A DNA stretch of 64,000 nt from Guillardia theta CCMP2712 (GCF_000315625.1 NW_005434663.1:186001-250000), one strand, 5' to 3'. Positions 36,012 to 45,243 are shown, numbered from the stretch's first letter. Numbers and translations: made by a program. The notes: generated by a model not told the origin, from the letters alone.

Positions 36012-39000
36012 TCAGACTTCATCTGAGTTGATCTGGTCTTGCACTAACAGCAAATTCTTTCGCGACGCCAGCGTGCGAGGATGCTCCTCTCCGAGACACT
36101 TGAGACGGATGTCGTAGGCGCGCTGATACAGTTGCCTTCTCCTCCTCATCAGCCCCCGCCCCCTCGTCTCTCCATCAGCACCTGCTCAGTTGCTTCTCTC
36201 CGCAGTGAAACGCCAACGTAGCGAGGGAGTTGAGGTCCGTCGCCACCTGCGGGCTCTCTGCTCCGAAGAACTGTTTCCGGTCAGCCTCGCCTCCCCCTCC
36301 TCCCTTCCACCTCCTCGTCGATCTTCAGCGCCTGCTGCACCAGCTCCGAAGCCTCCGCATAGTTTCCCCTGCTCGATGTGAGCAGGAGCGGAGGCTAGTC
36401 AAGGCACCTCTTGGCCTCCAGGATTGCCATGTTGTTCATGTGCACCGCCACCTTGACCCGCGTCAGCTGCCGTCGAGCTCCCACGTCATCACCTTGGGAT
36501 GCTCAAGGCCGAGAGTCTCCTGCAGCATATCCAGCGCTTCCTTTCGCAGCTTGAAGGCCTGCCATGCAGTGAGAGGCCGAACGGGAGGCGCCTCCTCTAC
36601 CTCGTCGCGGTCGTTGAAGCCTTCCTCCCAGATCCCCGCGAGGTGATTGAGAGAGGTCGCGATGGACGGGTGAGCTTGACCGTAGACTTGCCGTTTGATG
36701 CTGCGAGCTCAGGCTCAGCTCCGCTAGAGGACGGGGTGAGGGACCTCAGGCTCCGTTGAAACAGCAGGAGGGCTCGCTGGTACTCCTTCTTGGCCGCCAG
36801 CACCTGCCGTTCTTGAGGCCAAGGCAGCTGCCAGCCCCTCTACTCACACGTGCCAAGTTGGAGAGAGCAGAGGCGAGGTAGGGGCTGGTGCTGATGACGT
36901 GTGAGCAGCAGAGGAGACGGTGAGCAAAGAAACCTCCCAAGCGCTCTCTCCCAGATCTCTATCGCCTCCTCCATGTGCTCCTGGGCCTCCTGTAGTTCGC
37001 CTGGAGGTGGTCACTCCGATTTGATCCCTTTCTCCTCTTCACCTTTGGCTAGGAAAGCCTCGCCGACACTCATCAGAGCTGATGCAGTCTGAGGTGAAGA
37101 GAAGCGACAAGGAAACGACGAGAATGAGAGAAGAGGAGATGGAGAAAGGAGGGAGAGAGGAGGTGAGCATACATAAAATCAGCTGATGTTCTACCTGATA
37201 ATGATCGTTCGGCAAAGAATTCCTGCAAATCTCTAGAGCTTTCTGTCGCAGTTGATATCCCATCGAAGAATTTCCCATCTCCTTTCACCACCATCACTGC
37301 AGCCATTCCGAGAAGCGAACGAGAATACAATCATGCAAGAGCCGAGGTTGAGATAGGAAGCGACGACTTCACTGTCTTGGCTATCTGAGCTCGTCAAGTC
37401 AAATAACTTCCGCACATCGCTCGATCTTCCTTGAAGCTTCTCGCGGATCTCCAAGGCTTTTCTTAGATGCTTCTCTGCTTCCTTGTACTTCCCCTGTGCC
37501 TGTTGTCCCTCTCAGTCTCTCCTCCACCCCCCCGGCTTCCCCCGTCATCACCTGCAGGCTCACTCCCAGCTCGTCGAGAGCCTGTGCGGCTGCTCGACTC
37601 TCTTGTCCCACAGCGAGGACGACGCTGAGGTCTCATCAGTCGCTGATTCTCATGCTCGCTCCCTCACATGTCAAGCACCGCTTGCTTCTCCACCACAGCC
37701 TCATCGATGTCTCCAAGCGCCTGCAGCAGCAAACTTGACAGACGCCTCCTCCTCCTCATCGTCTCCTCCTTCTCTGCTTCTCACCAACAGCGTCGAGCCG
37801 TATTCTCCTCGCACAAGCGCGGCCAGCAGCGGCTGGTCGGGAGGAAGGAGGTTGATGGCTCTCTGTCCCTCACATCAGCCAGCAAGGCGCATCCGGGCGC
37901 ACAGGGACCAGGGAGAGAAGCTTCGCCTCGTACACCTCTCCTTTCTGCCTCGCCACCGACGCCAGCACCGAGACCTCCACGCACAGCTGGGGGCTGAGAG
38001 TGAGAGGGAGCGACACGTCAGCTCCCAGCTACCTCCGAGCTGTTCGACGCATGCTCGTCCATCAGTCTCACAACTTCACTCTAACTCCAGCTCAGCCCCA
38101 GCTGCCTCACCCCAACGTCTTACCTGCGTCTCCCATGCCTTCAAGTAGTTTCCTTGTCGCATCTGATTGCTGACGTCATGGACTCGCCTCGCTCGCTCTC
38201 TCGTACATGCAGTTGGCTCCTCGCGCTCGCGAGTTTGGCTCGCAGAAGCTCACTGCTTCTCTCTTCCTTTACCGACTTCACCTCCTCCTCTGCCAGCCTC
38301 AAAACCTCTGACGCTTCCGCTGAGAGGCCGAGACCAACGCCCAGGACCCGTGCGACCGCAACGAAGCCGTCAATGCGAACAAGCACAGGCAGCTGTAAGA
38401 GGATGAGAGAAAGGTTGGTGCGGGTTAAAGCGAAGAGAGGAAAAAGAAGAGGAAGAGATGCGGGAGAGAGAGAAAGAGACTACCTGGGAGGACTTGGCGA
38501 AAGAGATGACGTCATCTACATTGATAGGCTGATCTACTCCTTCAAGTGACTTGCACATTTCAATGAGATATTCGTCGTTCATTTGCTGCGAGAAGAAAGA
38601 ATCCAAGAGCAAGCTGCAGCATCACATCACAACTGACACTTCAGCTTCTGTCACTTACGACTTCGCGTCTTCAACTTCTCCCGCAGCTATCAGCTCGCGG
38701 ACCTTTAGGACCTTCACTGGCATGTGAGATGAGTGTGCTCAAGTGACAAGCAGCTCGACCATCCCGCTTGAGTCGTTCTGCTCCCCCTGCCGCCTTGTCA
38801 CCTTCAACTGGATGCGCTTCTCTGTTGCTCACCAGCGCTGACAACTTGCCAACATCAGCAAGCGAGCGAAGGACCGCGAAGGCATCGTCCTGCTGAGAGC
38901 GAAGCGCCAAACTGGGAGAACCTGACTTCATGACAAAGGGCAAAGCAGAGAGATAGATAGAGACTGGTAGAAAGATAGATGGAGACTGGTAGAAAGATAG

Positions 39001-39610
39001 ATGGAGACTGGTAGAAAGATAGATGGAGACTGGTAGAAAGATAGATGGAGACTGGTAGAAAGATAGATGGAGACTGGTAGAAAGATAGATGGAGACTGGT
39101 AGAAAGATAGATGGAGACTGGTAGAAAGATAGATGGAGACTGGTAGAAAGATAGATGGAGACTGGTAGAAAGATAGATGGAGACTGGTAGAAAGATAGAT
39201 GGAGACTGGTAGAAAGATAGATGGAGACTGGTAGAAAGATAGATAGAGACTGGTAGAAAGATAGATGGAGACTGGTATAAAGATAGGACAACCTCGACGC
39301 CCGTCGCCTTTGCCGACATGAAATCAAACGCGACTCCGGTGATGACCATCTGACAGGAGAGCAAGGGAAGGGACATCACTACATCAGCTCAGACAAGCCA
39401 AAGAGAAACCTTGACGACATCCTGCCATGAGATGGCGGGAGACCTGCCGGCTCAGGTTGATTGGATCAGTCAAGTGAGCACAAAGAAAGTTACAGGGGGC
39501 AGTCAAGAAGCCTTTGACGAGTTGCAAGCAGAGCATGAGGAGGAGAAAGCGGCCTGAGGGAGTCAAAGTGTGAACTGATACTTTCACGATCGGTCAAACT
39601 CACGAAGCAT
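36012..39610 (-). CDS. TPR (kinesin-light-chain-like) repeat protein with plastid-type leader
   Basis: Repeats such as AAAQALDELGVSLQ, VVASYLNLG, LASALSNLARV, KEYQRALLLFQRSL; spliced N-terminus MLRRFLLLMLCLQLVKG-FLTAP. Confidence 0.65.
38950..39285. repeat. 22-bp minisatellite (ATGGAGACTGGTAGAAAGATAG), ~15 copies, intronic
   Basis: Near-perfect tandem copies, no spacers. Confidence 0.95.
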
Positions 39611-39764
39611 GCTGTTGGAGAACTGAAGAAAGTGTCAGCTGCAGTAGTGATGTCACAGCAGAGAAGAGGGACACAAGGAAAATCAGACAATAAAAGAAGT
39701 CCCCAATTCACTTCATTTGATCTCGTCCATAACACGCTGCAGCATCATCACCATATTCTCATTC

Positions 39765-40020
39765 TTGTACCTCATACTTGTACGTCATACTTGTATCTCA
39801 TACTTGTACGTCATACTTGTACCTCATACTTGTATCTCATACTTGTACGTCATACTTGTAGCTCATACTTGTAGCTCATACTTGTAGCTCATACTTGTAT
39901 CTCATACTTGTACCTCATACTTGTACCTCATACTTGTACCTCATACTTGTAGCTCATACTTGTAGCTCATACTTGTACCTCATACTTGTATCTCATACTT
40001 GTATCTCATTCATACTTGTT
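39765..40020. repeat. 13-bp minisatellite (TCATACTTGTAnn), ~19 copies
   Basis: Tandem copies varying only at two positions. Confidence 0.95.
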
Positions 40021-40132
40021 CGCAAACTTCTTGTCTCCTACCGTGCCTCTATGTTTGTCCCGTCATCCCGATCAAAGGTTTTCATTTTTAAAATGAAGTG
40101 CACCAGTTTTAATAATCTACAGCGCGACCGAT

Positions 40133-43100
40133 TCACTCGCATCGCTTGTTTCGGAACTCCACGTATCGCTTGTGCCCGTCAGCCGTCTTGAGGGTCATGA
40201 AGCGATCGAGAACGAGCTGCCAACAAGATCAGACGCTGATGGTGGTGAAGGAGGAGGAGGAGGAGTGAGAGAAGAAGAATGCTCATGAGAAGGCATAGCA
40301 TTTGCTTCAGTCGAACTTTACCTGGAGTTCGCATATGTGGTTTGAGAGGCCTAGCGCTCTCGTCCTGGGGCTCGTAAGTTTCATGTTGAGTGCCACGTCC
40401 CTGCCAGCCACGATCCGTAAGGTCGCAAAGACAAAAGAGGAGACAAGATAAGGAAGAGGAGGAGGAGCAGAAGAGGTAGAGGAGAGGACGCGAGCGAGGG
40501 AGCAAGTAGGAAGCACCTGTAGCCTGCGGACAGCTTGGAGTTGTAGAGAGGGTCAAGTCTGTTTTTGATCCTGACTACTTCAATCTCTGGGTCATCGCAG
40601 ATCCTCTCAATGCACAAGCGCAGGTCGCTGATGTCCTCGAAGATGATGCACTGACGCACGACGTCTACGAGCTTGGATACGTCCCCCAGGTAACTCCGCG
40701 AAAGCTTCTCGATGGCTCGGTCGACGCTCTTGAGCCCGGCCCACTTGATCCTCAGGTTGCTCCCGTTCCCCCACCTCATCTCGTCCCACCTCACAAAGCA
40801 GTCCATTGCGTTCACCAGCGGGAAGCAGCCCCGGCAGGCCCCCGCAAACTCCTGCACCTTCATGGTGAAGTAAGGCTCCAGCAGCGCTGCCTGCACGTAG
40901 AGCTGGTCGAGGGACGTGACGTAGCTGGACACCAGCTTGACGCGGCAGAGCAGAGGATTGGGATGCACGCCCTCGTATGTCTCGAGGAACTTACAGTGTT
41001 GGGCCTCAGAGTCGGCGAGGAGAGCAGAGGACGCAGCAAAGGCTTGCCGCACCAACTTGTTCTTCGTGTCCTGTCGCGCGACCACCTTGGCAAGCTTGTC
41101 GATCTCCATCTTGTTCTCCTCCCTCGCCCTCAGCTCCTCCCACGCTCTGTCGTACTTTTGCTTGTCCGGGGCGATCGCATGCCAGGACTTGAAGAGGACG
41201 TACTGCCGAAGGCTGATCAAGACGACCCAGAAGCCCATCATGATAGTGGCGCTAATGGGAACCCACGAGGTCGCGTGGGAGGGCGTGATGATGACAAGGT
41301 TGTAGAGGATGAGACCGCTGATGTTGAAGCCCCAGTTGAAGGGAATGAAGGAAATGAAGCGCTTGCCTTCGAACTGCACGATGTAGCCGAAGATGAGGGA
41401 GGTCAGTCCGATGACCCACCAGTAGAAGCTGTCCTGAGCATGCTCCGACCTCGCCAAGGCTCCAGCTGTGATGAGCTCCATCAACCCGGGGGCCCAGAAG
41501 CAGAAGGAGAAGGCTGCTGTCGGCGCCATCGTCTTCCCCTGCTGCGTCAGCACCGGCACGGCGAGGCAGCCGATGAAGATGGGAATGTAGACAACACAAG
41601 TGCCGAGGATGGAGAACCAGGGCGGGCGTATATCGATCACCAGCTTCTTTCCTGCCTCCACGTGCCCGACAGGGACAGCCATGCAGGCCGTGTAGTCGAT
41701 GCCCCAGCGGCAGGGAGCGGCGGAGAGGGCGAAGGTCTGGTTGCTACTAGACGAGTAGGAGATGGAGAACTCAAGTTTCGTGACCTCTGACGAGGATGCT
41801 GGCCGAGTGCTCAGAGTGTAACCGTTTGCCGTTACATCATCAGTGTAGTCGATGCGAATCGTCTTAGTGCCAAGCTGGGTGACGGTCTCAGCTGGGACCC
41901 TGCAGCCATCGCGCGTGAGCGCAAAGTCAGCAACGAGGCTGAGGGGAGGGGCCGGAGGGTCCGCGAACTCAAGCGACACCGAGCGAGCTGAGAACTTGTT
42001 GGTGCCCAGAGCCTGCTGGAGGCTTCCGTGGGGGTTGAAGAAGTAGTAGAGGAAGTAGATGCCGGCGAGCCCGATGATGCTTCTGATCCAGGGCTTGTGG
42101 ATGGAGAGAAAGACAGGATTGTCCGTGAAGAGCACGCTCGCCGTGTCAGCGTTCTTGACCGCCAGACGAAACTCCGACAGTCGCGACATAAGCAGGTCGC
42201 CGGGGAAGCAGCTCCTCTGCTGCATAATCGCCGCAAGGCGTTCCTGTGTGGTCAGCGAAGCCTCTTGTCGCTCCCTCAGGCCCTCCTGCCCGGCCACTCG
42301 CAAGTTCGCCTCGTTGCCCTGCGTCATCACCTGAACCTCTTGCAGCTCGTCGTCTCCTCTCCTCCTCCTCCTCCTCCACGGCGCTGAGACCACCCAGCCC
42401 CGCACGTGGGTCCATGCCTGCTGCAGGAGATGCAGCACTTCGGTGTAGCGCTGGAAGTGTGTGATGCGGCGGAATTGGATGTAACGCTTGTGCTGCTCGT
42501 CGTTGGTGAGGTCCAGGAAGCTCCTGAGAGCAAGCTGCAGCTCACACACGTGCCCCGTCAGGTTTCGCTGCCTCGTCTCTGCGTTTTTAATTCGCACGTT
42601 GACGCAGACATCCCGGTAACCCGCAGACAGCCAGGTGTTGTACTGCAAGTCCAGCCGGTTCTTGACCCTCACCACCTCTAGGCTCGCATCCTCCTCCAGC
42701 GCCACGAGGGCGGCGAGCAGGTCGTTGAGATTGTCGAAGGCGATTCGTTCCCTCACGATGTCAACCAGCCGACTCACGTCAGAATCGTAGGAGCGCGTCA
42801 GCTTCTCGATCGCCTTGCTCACGTACTTGAGCTCTGCCCACTGCACCCACCCGTGAACCTCCGGCAGCTCGCTCACCTCCTCCCAGAGCATGTACCCCCT
42901 TCCTCCTGCCCAGCCATGGCACAAGGCCTGCGGGGTCCCGGGCTTGCACAGGAAGTAGCCTCGGCTTCTCAGGGCCACCTGCTTCACCTGGCTGCGGAAG
43001 ATCTCTTCGATAGAAACAGCCTGCGCGTACAGCTGATCGAGACACGTGACGCGCTGGCTGGAGACGTTGAACTTGGCGATCAACGAGGAGAACATGGGGC

Positions 43101-45243
43101 TGTTTCGCTCCCAGAGGTGGAGGCGGCGCGATGACACCAACCCAGTCGGACCGTCAAGAAGATCTCTGGTGGATCGCACGCGGAAAGACGGAGCTGGCAA
43201 TTCAGTTCGAGCAGTGGGGAAGCTAAACCTGGAGGCAAGGCTCGCTGCTGCTCCTTCACTTCCCATGTTCACACCTTCCACGCACGCCATCGTCGACGTC
43301 ATCATAGTTTGCTGTCTGGGAGTCAGAGTTGAGCTGTCGCTCTTGACCATCGCCCGCGCCACCTTGTTGACCTTGTCGAGCACAAGCAACGTCTCTCCCT
43401 GCTCCAGCAACTCCCTCCACTCGCTCTCAAAGAGCTTCACGTCCCCGGATATGATCCTCCTGCCGTTCCATCGAATGCGCTCCCTAAGGACCACAAGGAA
43501 CAAGACGGTGGCGAGGATGACGATGGAGATGACAGGCCAGTCCTCTGACTTGGCGAGAGTGAAACCCGAGACTATGAGAATCATGCTAGAGCAGATGGTC
43601 TGCTCGAAGACAAGCGCCTCGCTGACGATGAGCGGCACTGGAAAGATCGTGATGCCCTGCAGGCGGGTCATAGACGGAAGACCAACAGCCACCTCGCTCT
43701 CACCACCAACGCCTCGATGAGGAGACTGACGGGGTTGCCATAGACAGAGAGCTTGTAATCGTGGCCATTTGCCATGAGGACGGCGCTCGAGCACAACGAC
43801 AACAGGTAGAGGAAGGTGAAGCCAAAGGAGATGATCTGCTGATGCGTCAGCCCGGCAGCGAGCTGGAGAAATCTCACCTTCACGGGGATGCTGTACTTCT
43901 CGAGGAACGCAACAACAGCTGCTGCCAGCATGATGAGGCCGGAGATCGCCCTGGCAACGATGTAGGCGTATTCCGGCCATAGGCAATCGAAATCGATGAA
44001 ATTGAAGGGAACCGCGACGTTTCTGGCAGCAGGTAGATGGAACTCAGGGACGTCGGAGAGGACTTGCTGCCTGGAGGAGAGTATTTCTCCTCGATGATTT
44101 CCGCACTGTTTGGAGAGCGTGATCAGTCGCCAATTAACGCCGTCGTGTGATCCCTCTAGCGCGAACTTCACGGGGTCTTGATCTACAGGCCCTTTCCCGG
44201 TGGTCAGGAACCAGCCATCAAAGGACGTCGGAGAAGGAAAGAAGAGGATTTCAGAGCTGCCGTCAGCAGCAGACGCGTTGGTATGGAGTAGAGGGCAGCC
44301 TCCTCGCATGATGCCGAAAGAAGAGATCCCAGCGCTTGTGATCGCCTTCCCCGTTGCACCGTTGCGAAGTTGTAACGCTTGAAAGCGCACGAGAGAGAAG
44401 CTTTGCATCTCCAGCTCTTGGACTTGAGACCAGGGAGCAAACAAGATCGCATTGGGCGGTCGAAGCAGGAAGAGCAGACCGACGACGAAGAGAACCATCT
44501 GCATCCATCTCAAAGTCACCGCTGATGAAAACGGGCGCCTCGAACAGAAGACCCTCCACGATTCATTCCTAAAGATGTTGTTCCTAGCAAAGATGAGCTT
44601 GTCTTGCAGACTGTTGCCATTCTTTGAAGCCACAGATGAGAGATAATCCAGCAGCTCCTTGTTCTTGGCTTCCTCTTCTGCTACCCCGACATCCTCCGGC
44701 CTCGAAGAGTCCGACAAGTCATCGTAGACCTCCTGCCATTCAATGGATCCAGTCTCAGAATTCTTCTTCTTCCTCCGGTCAAGCGTCCTCCCTGCATACA
44801 CCTCGCCGTGAAAGCATCGGGCGCCGAGGAGCTGAAGAACTTGCAGTAACCTGAAATCCTTCCGCGCGGAGTTGAAGATGTCAACTATCTTCAATCGAAA
44901 AGGGCCTTGACGTCTCCGTATGAGGCGGGATGAAAGTAGACGAGGGTAGCAATCCTCTTGGTTTTCATAGGCTACATGAAAGCTTTCGTCTGCTTCTGAC
45001 CTGTTCTCAAGCGAGATGGCAGGATCGAAGAATATCTCGAAATCATGTTGCGACAAACTTCTATTCCAACCGGTCGACTTCAGATGCTTGTGACCCATCA
45101 TTGATGGATTGTCCTTCTACAACTACAAAGGGTCATGTGCGGCTGGCACTCGCTTGACCTACCCCTTGGTTCACAACGGCAGGCCGTGTTGAAGCCCAAG
45201 GAAGTAACGTCATGGAGGCGATCCGAGACGGAACCCCTTCCAT
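40133..45243 (-). CDS. Membrane protein with two (6TM + ectodomain + RelA/SpoT-like nucleotidyltransferase) modules
   Basis: Two homologous cytosolic domains: LKYVSKAIEK..DIVR..GYRDVCVN..CELQL..HKRY and LKSVDRAIEK..DVVR..GYR|DVALN..CELQ|L..HKRY; last exon LVLDRFMTLKTADGHKRYVEFRNKRCE* ends at 40133; start approximate. Confidence 0.8.

Follow-up and report, generated by a model that had tools for sequence, protein, structure and literature searches.

A stretch of 64,000 nt from the alga Guillardia theta CCMP2712 (GCF_000315625.1, NW_005434663.1:186001-250000; the window, in which positions are counted from the first letter) carries on its minus strand a nuclear gene for a membrane protein built as an internal duplication. 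Each half consists of one transmembrane (TM) segment, a beta-sandwich loop, five further TM segments and a cytosolic domain. This ~190-aa domain is securely identified as a divergent RelA/SpoT homologue (RSH) synthetase fold, closest to the small alarmone synthetases (SAS) RelQ, RelP, Tas1/Apk1 and CapRel. The gene had been noticed in a preliminary description made from the DNA letters alone, and that observation was confirmed as real. The enzyme superfamily is a known one, the membrane-anchored tandem architecture is new, and the function is what we infer: on balance we think it probable, if only just, that the domains are active RSH pyrophosphokinases using a purine-nucleotide acceptor and controlled in a receptor-like manner by the loop and six-TM module.

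The gene model was rebuilt from the sequence and checked against RNA-derived contigs and raw reads. Two minus-strand open frames, of 477 codons (45101-43668) and 1,201 codons (43986-40381), are joined through GT-AG introns, and two short terminal exons finish the second cytosolic domain (C2), giving a coding sequence at 45101..40133 (minus strand) with five exons and four GT-AG introns:

45101-43878, 43835-43704, 43656-40517, 40400-40322 and 40216-40133, minus strand: the five exons (splice sites and RNA contigs)
43836..43877, minus strand: facultative in-frame intron of 42 nt (14 aa) in the first membrane module (joint 43835/43878 in X1 record 4)
43657..43703, minus strand: intron of 47 nt, GT..AG (sequence and RNA contigs)
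40401..40516, minus strand: intron of 116 nt, GT..AG, interrupting C2 after GYR (sequence and RNA contigs)
40217..40321, minus strand: intron of 105 nt, GT..AG, interrupting C2 after CELQ (sequence and RNA contigs)
40135-40133, minus strand: stop codon TGA (sequence)
40069..45227, minus strand: minimum extent of the transcript, from overlapping spliced contigs (X1 records 1, 2 and 4)

All four splice joints were present in the RNA-derived contigs X1/X4, and the last two were also visible in the raw reads X17 (a run recorded as RNA, with a strong 3'-end bias), in which loose ends at 40322 read into the start of the last exon. The RNA check of the gene model proposed earlier thus came out in its favour: the contig joints 40216/40322 (105 nt), 40399/40516 (116 nt) and 43655/43703 (47 nt) coincide exactly with predicted exon borders, and their CT..AC ends on the plus strand are the GT..AG of a minus-strand gene. 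The 42-nt intron (43877-43836) is retained in X1 record 3 (43808-43903); the protein is 1,552 aa long, or 1,566 aa with this intron kept.

Whether the two halves form one gene or an artefact of annotation was decided by the same contigs. X1 record 1 starts at 40069 and, by way of C2 and the second membrane module, reaches the first cytosolic domain (C1, to 42852), which places both halves on one transcript; records 2 (42842-43837) and 4 (43808-45227) continue the coverage, and no stop lies between the halves, so that the earlier claim of a single gene holds. An artefact would mean either two adjoining genes or coding-looking introns of the kind drawn in the public model GUITHDRAFT_134358 (1,149 aa, 'hypothetical protein', 99-100% identical to the gene parts it keeps). 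That model takes the whole of C1, an 81-nt coding piece before it and most of C2 as introns, and the deposited protein is therefore left without any catalytic domain. The spliced RNA contigs, however, are continuous over these stretches, crossing both domains without skips and bridging the halves; the 1,201-codon open frame extends over C1 and the second membrane module into the first part of C2; and the same tandem order recurs in dozens of paralogs and orthologs. We conclude that the public gene model is wrong, and regard an artefact as scarcely credible.

The translation start is most likely the ATG at 45101, since the 5' transcript contig is unspliced from 43878 up to 45227 and the ATG at 45243, given as the start in the preliminary description, is out of frame; lying 142 nt upstream and running into a stop, the latter was rejected. 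It opens a short out-of-frame open reading frame (ORF), within 45130-45243, that ends before ATG 45101 and may be an upstream ORF if the transcript extends that far; the RNA contig stops at 45227. At the other end of the gene, the two introns within 40240-40473 are of purine/pyrimidine-rich low complexity and attract short pieces of many unrelated, highly covered contigs of run X2, which are no evidence about the gene.

Topology was derived by simple rules rather than with a dedicated predictor, from a hydropathy scan (half 1), an AlphaFold model of the half-2 module and flank charges. The parts of the protein, from the N-terminus, are:

44520..45101, minus strand: N-terminal region, aa 1-194, presumed cytosolic, without hydrophobic leader or Pfam family (Pfam, hydropathy)
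44457..44519, minus strand: TM1 of half 1, aa ~195-215, with an Arg-rich flank before it (hydropathy, flank charges)
43962..44456, minus strand: predicted extracytoplasmic loop 1, aa ~216-380, ~165 aa (topology rules; homologous to loop 2 and paralog loops)
43486..43961, minus strand: TM2-TM6 of half 1, aa ~381-523, a span holding two introns (hydropathy)
42445..43053, minus strand: C1, first RSH-synthetase-like domain, aa 668-870 (Pfam E 0.04, sub-cut-off; AlphaFold, Foldseek, VIA)
42037..42093, minus strand: TM1 of half 2, aa ~988-1006 (AlphaFold model, flank charges)
41620..42036, minus strand: predicted extracytoplasmic loop 2, aa ~1007-1145, ~139 aa, predicted beta sandwich (AlphaFold model)
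41197..41619, minus strand: TM2-TM6 of half 2, aa ~1146-1286 (AlphaFold model, flank charges)
40133..40926, minus strand: C2, second RSH-synthetase-like domain, aa ~1377-1566, with two introns inside (identity to C1, profile match E 1e-75)

In half 1 the hydropathy scan resolved 1+5 segments, with TM1 at ~aa 195-215 followed by the loop and by five segments reaching aa 523. The AlphaFold model of the half-2 membrane module, computed from an alignment of 30 homologous modules (predicted local distance difference test, pLDDT, 91), shows a single helix followed by a beta sandwich (model residues 47-167) and then by five long helices, of which the last continues into the cytosol. Scan and model together bear out the 6TM-cat-6TM-cat layout suggested earlier. 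The loops had been put at ~120-140 aa, which fits the second (~139 aa) and falls short of the first (~165 aa). Each has three Cys and one N-x-S/T site, loop 1 carries the motif DP..F.LEGS.DG..W, and each membrane module matches both modules of paralogs. Both catalytic domains are predicted to be cytosolic, on the same side as the N-terminus, because the protein has no N-terminal leader, six TM segments per half, Arg/Lys-rich flanks before TM1 and after TM6, and in each loop the three Cys and the N-glycosylation sequon. No N-terminal hydrophobic leader was found in the hydropathy scan, the first hydrophobic segment lying only at aa 195, in agreement with the earlier statement that no plastid leader is present.

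The duplication extends to the cytosolic parts, as had been claimed: C1 and C2 share 41% identity over 158 aa (E 2e-29), and the halves also resemble each other in the last TM segment and juxtamembrane stretch. The ordered motifs read earlier in both cytosolic domains are indeed there, as K..(R/K)AIEK, D..R, (R)xKNR, GYRD..N, H..E.Q and H..Y..R, and coincide with columns that are invariant or nearly so in a 64-sequence alignment of the catalytic domain, from which the family profile used below was built.

Fold assignment did not depend on a single method. The AlphaFold model of C1 (pLDDT 93.5) gave RSH synthetases as all 50 of its top 50 Foldseek matches, with CapRel the best by query TM score (0.56, root-mean-square deviation (rmsd) 2.8). 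In the structural ranking RelQ (13.1) and RelP (12.6) were followed by Tas1 (11.8), an exported synthetase (11.3) and CapRel (11.2), then by the long Rel/SpoT/RelA enzymes (10.9-8.3) and other nucleotidyltransferases (7 or less). The fold is secure because AlphaFold, Foldseek and this ranking agree on RSH synthetases. Searched against all PDB sequences, the family profile matched Tas1 (E 5.4e-4) and RelP/YwaC (E 3.4e-3); the fold proposed for both cytosolic domains, a Pol-beta-like nucleotidyltransferase of the RelA/SpoT synthetase type, is thereby sustained. A single-sequence PDB search with C1 returned capreomycin phosphotransferase and mandelate racemase at chance level, which was overruled by the agreement of profile and fold on RSH, and chance-level NCBIfam matches of C1 were dismissed likewise. 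In the whole protein at Pfam E<=1 the sole match was RelA_SpoT, with no HD, TGS, ACT, cyclase (Guanylate_cyc) or ABC domain; the stated lack of HD, TGS and ACT domains is accordingly correct. Among the 64 homologous domains, 27 matched RelA_SpoT (PF04607) at E<=1 (best E 3e-6), paralogs P0008 and P0004 scored 25.4 and 23.2 bits, relative P0058 carries a precomputed PF04607 match, and two family members matched the NCBIfam model of the GTP diphosphokinase YjbM.

The residues on which catalysis would depend are kept in both copies (numbering as in the C1 piece). Seven columns of the 64-sequence alignment are invariant (K76, D98, R101, D122, G145, R147 and E171) and 19 further columns nearly so. 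When the family profile is aligned with RelP, K76 corresponds to the Lys of RxK, D98 to the Asp of HDIAGVR (RelP position 87), G145-R147 to GYR, and E171-Q173 to the Glu-x-Gln of AEIQ. The equivalent of D98 (RelSeq D264 / RelP D87) is a Mg ligand, and that of E171 (RelSeq E323), in E-x-Q, the catalytic Glu; mutation of the Mg-ligand Asp abolishes the activity of YwaC and RelSeq. D98 and E171 are present in both C1 and C2, as the preliminary description had it for the synthetase Asp and Glu. In all, 22 of 22 tracked residues are kept in the two domains, the single change being R80K in C1, and the basic motif for the ATP phosphates retains K76 and K84 with R/K80 added. The counterpart of GYxSxH is GYRD-V-(C/A)-x-N, in which G, Y and R are kept. 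A 'His-to-Asn/Asp' change had been read here out of register: GYRSLH pairs with GYRD-V-(C/A), which puts Asp in place of Ser and a small residue in place of His, with the conserved Asn two positions beyond.

From these kept residues, which do not name the acceptor, we expect the domains to bind ATP and to transfer pyrophosphate. In the reading that we favour, the Lys/Arg cluster (K..R..K and D..R) of both domains would bind ATP, and the domains would work as Mg-dependent pyrophosphokinases, passing the beta-gamma pyrophosphate of ATP to the 3'-OH of an acceptor that stacks against the GYRD Tyr, with the invariant Asp and Glu acting as in Rel/RelQ. The acceptor would most likely be a purine nucleotide, giving a (p)ppGpp- or (p)ppApp-type product in the cytosol. 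The loop and six-TM module would regulate this activity, turning a cue at a membrane, be it the plasma membrane or an endomembrane, into an alarmone-type nucleotide.

Several observations weigh against active, receptor-controlled enzymes. C1 reaches 14.6 bits (E 0.04) with PF04607 against a gathering cut-off of 27 bits; in the Pfam check proposed earlier, RelA_SpoT was the only family matched, below its cut-off. The domains lack the Arg of canonical RxK, have D..R as their Asp-to-Arg spacing (Arg at +3, not +5) and match no canonical G-loop Gly, and where GYxSxH has its His they have Cys (C1) or Ala (C2). Among 36 tandem relatives the second domain hardly departs from the consensus, and the first is often relaxed at Y146 (F), D148 (A), R133 and Q173 (R), with D98 and E171 kept; the first domain of some paralogs may be regulatory rather than catalytic, whereas C1 and C2 of the present gene look intact to the same degree. 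The membrane module found no convincing structural relative in Foldseek, the ESM Atlas or an exhaustive VIA search, and no ligand can be named. Lastly, no stand-alone HD_4 hydrolase was found in G. theta: the sole two HD_4 matches belong to the two long RSH genes, each with HD_4 and RelA_SpoT, that are also the only genes found there by the canonical Pfam model. No obvious cytosolic degrading enzyme is left, HD_4 being confined to those two genes.

Pushed to its limit, the sub-cut-off Pfam score, taken with the missing RxK Arg, G-loop Gly and GYxSxH His, would describe a catalytically dead pseudo-enzyme or scaffold that keeps the fold only. We consider this very unlikely. K76, D98, R101, G145, R147 and E171 never vary among the 64 diverse sequences and hardly vary among 242 proteins whose domains were scored. 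Moreover, the active toxin Tas1 has two of the same deviations, being likewise without the RxK Arg and with D..R spacing, and these two features therefore need not abolish activity.

The protein belongs to a large family. Exhaustive searching with the domain retrieved 1,643 representative proteins at E<=1e-3, of which 631 reach E<=1e-10. A six-frame profile search of the G. theta genome gave 109 matches, of which the 79 at E<=2e-25 resolve, when counted by hand, into ~29 pairs lying ~2.1 kb apart on one strand and ~21 singles, giving ~29 tandem and ~20 single-domain paralogs in a family of ~50 genes. Mean column identity is 40% in the catalytic domain and 26% in the membrane module. Named relatives come from the cryptophytes Hemiselmis, Hanusia, Rhodomonas and Cryptomonas and from one pelagophyte; a third homologue search, started from a single-module relative, again returned mainly cryptophytes, and the Atlas points to diatom and ciliate clusters, whose membership was not confirmed by name. 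A few paralogs are called 'RelA/SpoT domain-containing protein' in UniProt, most being 'hypothetical protein', and one relative is named at JGI as a ppGpp synthetase-type nucleotidyltransferase.

About 25 further G. theta loci match only the first half of the profile. This second, more distant RSH-like group consists of long open frames (800-1,080 aa) without a Pfam family, which have several TM segments and a ~290-aa loop and finish with a domain carrying K..RA..K...D..R. One of them (L007, C4:1069500-1074000) aligns at 96% probability over K..RA..K...D..R, and another (L008, C71:206500-211500) has a complete domain with E-V-Q and with GYRD-L-S-L-H, nearer to the canonical GYxSxH, behind a polytopic membrane module with a ~290-aa loop. 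As the module of L008 differs in its larger loop, the same output domain follows membrane modules of at least two kinds in the G. theta genome. The ~50 paralogs, the better conservation of catalytic domains than of membrane and loop parts, and this second membrane-linked RSH-like family are the reasons for which we say that the family behaves like a signalling output. A wider proposal, put forward tentatively and with clearly less than even confidence, is that its members are transmembrane receptors with an alarmone-synthetase output, converting an extracellular or luminal cue into a (p)ppGpp/(p)ppApp-type nucleotide in the cytosol, in cryptophytes and, at lower copy number, in other marine protists.

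The same repertoire can be read differently, and this is the main rival. The domains could be immune or cell-death effectors, either draining ATP through (p)ppApp in the manner of toxic SAS (toxSAS; Tas1/Apk1, FaRel) or pyrophosphorylating the 3'-CCA of tRNA (CapRel, FaRel2, PhRel2), and the large divergent set of paralogs would then be receptors sensing a virus or other threat. Tas1 is the best PDB sequence match, sharing the motif K-S-x-x-R-A-x-x-K...Y-x-G-D...D-x-x-R and the lack of the RxK Arg; CapRel and Tas1 lie within ~2 Z units of the top structural match, and CapRel has the best Foldseek TM by query. Weak matches to the candidate phage-defence model PDC-S33 were obtained for 11 of 64 domains, the membrane and loop modules of the ~50 paralogs evolve fast, and a dedicated hydrolase was not found. 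RelA_SpoT domains are also reported as N-terminal effector domains of fungal NLR-like (nucleotide-binding leucine-rich-repeat-like) proteins, which we count on the same side. However, the housekeeping enzymes RelQ and RelP rank first structurally, no immunity or antitoxin-like partner is evident, the gene is expressed in ordinary culture transcriptomes with no sign of harm, and nothing ties the family to infection. Effectors therefore seem to us possible and rather improbable.

The overall layout invites comparison with other membrane proteins. Metazoan adenylyl cyclases (M1-C1-M2-C2) and ABCA transporters share the arrangement of twice six TM segments plus a cytosolic nucleotide-handling domain, and ABCA transporters also have the large loop after TM1. 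The likeness to adenylyl cyclases drawn in the preliminary description holds for topology, with two six-TM blocks and cytosolic domains, and fails for the catalytic part: the class III cyclase fold is unrelated to the RSH domain, and metazoan cyclases share one catalytic site between C1 and C2, whereas here each RSH domain has the full residue set. A complex prediction for C1 and C2 of paralog P0001 (C2 of the studied gene being split by introns) scored 0.00 and gives no answer on contact.

TM1, a large outer loop, five TM segments and a nucleotide-binding domain, twice over, are the ABCA-type layout, and a transporter- or channel-like protein might be considered, in which the RSH-like domains only bind ATP or alarmone and gate the membrane part, or the membrane part exports the product to signal outside the cell. 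Atkinson et al. 2011 speculated that ppGpp made by eukaryotic SAS might serve such extracellular signalling, some bacterial alarmone synthetases are exported, and the relaxed first domains of paralogs could be regulatory. The catalytic Asp and Glu are nevertheless invariant over hundreds of members, which argues for catalysis and not mere binding, and we hold a transporter to be unlikely.

The outer loop of half 1 had been called discoidin/F5-8C-like, and three weak leads point the same way: a Pfam F5_F8_type_C match in one of 31 homologous modules (E 0.006), an F5/8C cluster in an ESM-Atlas shape search (100 residues aligned, rmsd 3.7, low TM score), and F5/8C clusters at 0.81 in a language-model feature search, which the tool itself rates as a lead only. 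On the other side, the outer loop and membrane module of the protein have no Pfam match, and Foldseek and VIA against the PDB gave no clear discoidin match for the loop. A discoidin or galactose-binding-like loop is a reasonable lead that is not established.

Some paralogs form local arrays, on C30 (477-529 kb), C206 (46-57 kb), C1 (834-843 kb; here a contig) and C62 (107-113 kb), some of them head to head, which suggests recent tandem gene duplication. One cluster of relatives (P0054; environmental contigs up to 31.8 kb) contains a 339-aa member labelled as a Promethearchaeia (Asgard) metagenome-assembled genome, on a 1,016-bp contig; this is more likely a misbinned eukaryotic fragment than an archaeal gene. 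In the window itself, the gene is closely followed on its 3' side by two clean tandem arrays: a 22-nt unit in 15.5 copies (38947-39286, 98% matches), which produces spurious repetitive open frames, and a 13-nt unit in 19.4 copies (39758-40009, 92% matches).

The protein differs from each of its known relatives. RelQ/SAS1 and RelP/SAS2 (PF04607) are bacterial, soluble and homotetrameric, whereas the protein described here is eukaryotic, carries the domain twice per chain behind a six-TM module, is without the conserved RxK Arg, G-loop Gly and GYxSxH His, and stays below the Pfam cut-off. Tas1/Apk1 (a Pseudomonas aeruginosa type VI secretion (p)ppApp synthetase toxin, PDB 6OX6) and the exported synthetases (8VX3) are toxins of bacteria that are sent into or out of cells and come with immunity proteins; the present protein is membrane-anchored and has no secretion or immunity context. 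It also has neither the pseudo-zinc-finger domain (pseudo-ZFD) nor the antitoxin domain of the tRNA-pyrophosphorylating toxSAS CapRel/FaRel2. The plastid long RSH proteins (RSH1, RSH2/3 and RSH4/CRSH) belong to the same superfamily, and pass the Pfam cut-off, have a hydrolase domain and are plastid-targeted, none of which applies here. Similar in description are the unplaced divergent eukaryotic SAS listed as 'divRel' by Atkinson et al. 2011 (Dictyostelium, Aspergillus, Gibberella, Thalassiosira, Phaeodactylum), which are eukaryotic, uncharacterised and have a divergent synthetase domain only, as in the present family; the two are set side by side by description only, and the word 'transmembrane' is absent from the main text of that paper.

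In the literature searched, partly with loosely specified queries, no description was found of a membrane-anchored, tandem, receptor-like eukaryotic RSH protein. The suggestion of a 'possibly undescribed' system thus stands as far as the membrane architecture is concerned, on which no paper was found, and has to be qualified for the domain, since paralogs are auto-named RelA/SpoT and 'divRel' was listed in 2011. Magic-spot nucleotides are treated as bacterial and plastid signals. According to a 2025 paper, the bacterial cytoplasm had been regarded as the place of action of every characterised RSH enzyme, and a 2022 review records (p)ppGpp and the hydrolase MESH1 in animals, with no obvious synthetase.

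Synthesis of magic-spot nucleotides in the eukaryotic cytosol is an open question, for which this gene offers a well-expressed RSH synthetase domain, catalytically intact by its looks, predicted to face the cytosol, on a sensor-like module. The question is directly testable, with a culturable alga, a sequenced genome and two defined domains at hand. There is also a problem of annotation: the public model deletes the catalytic domains and the paralogs are mostly 'hypothetical', so that proteome-based surveys of RSH proteins would miss much of the family. If the proposed function is true, it would amount to a second-messenger system undescribed beyond bacteria and plastids, for which Guillardia theta by itself would have ~50 receptor genes.

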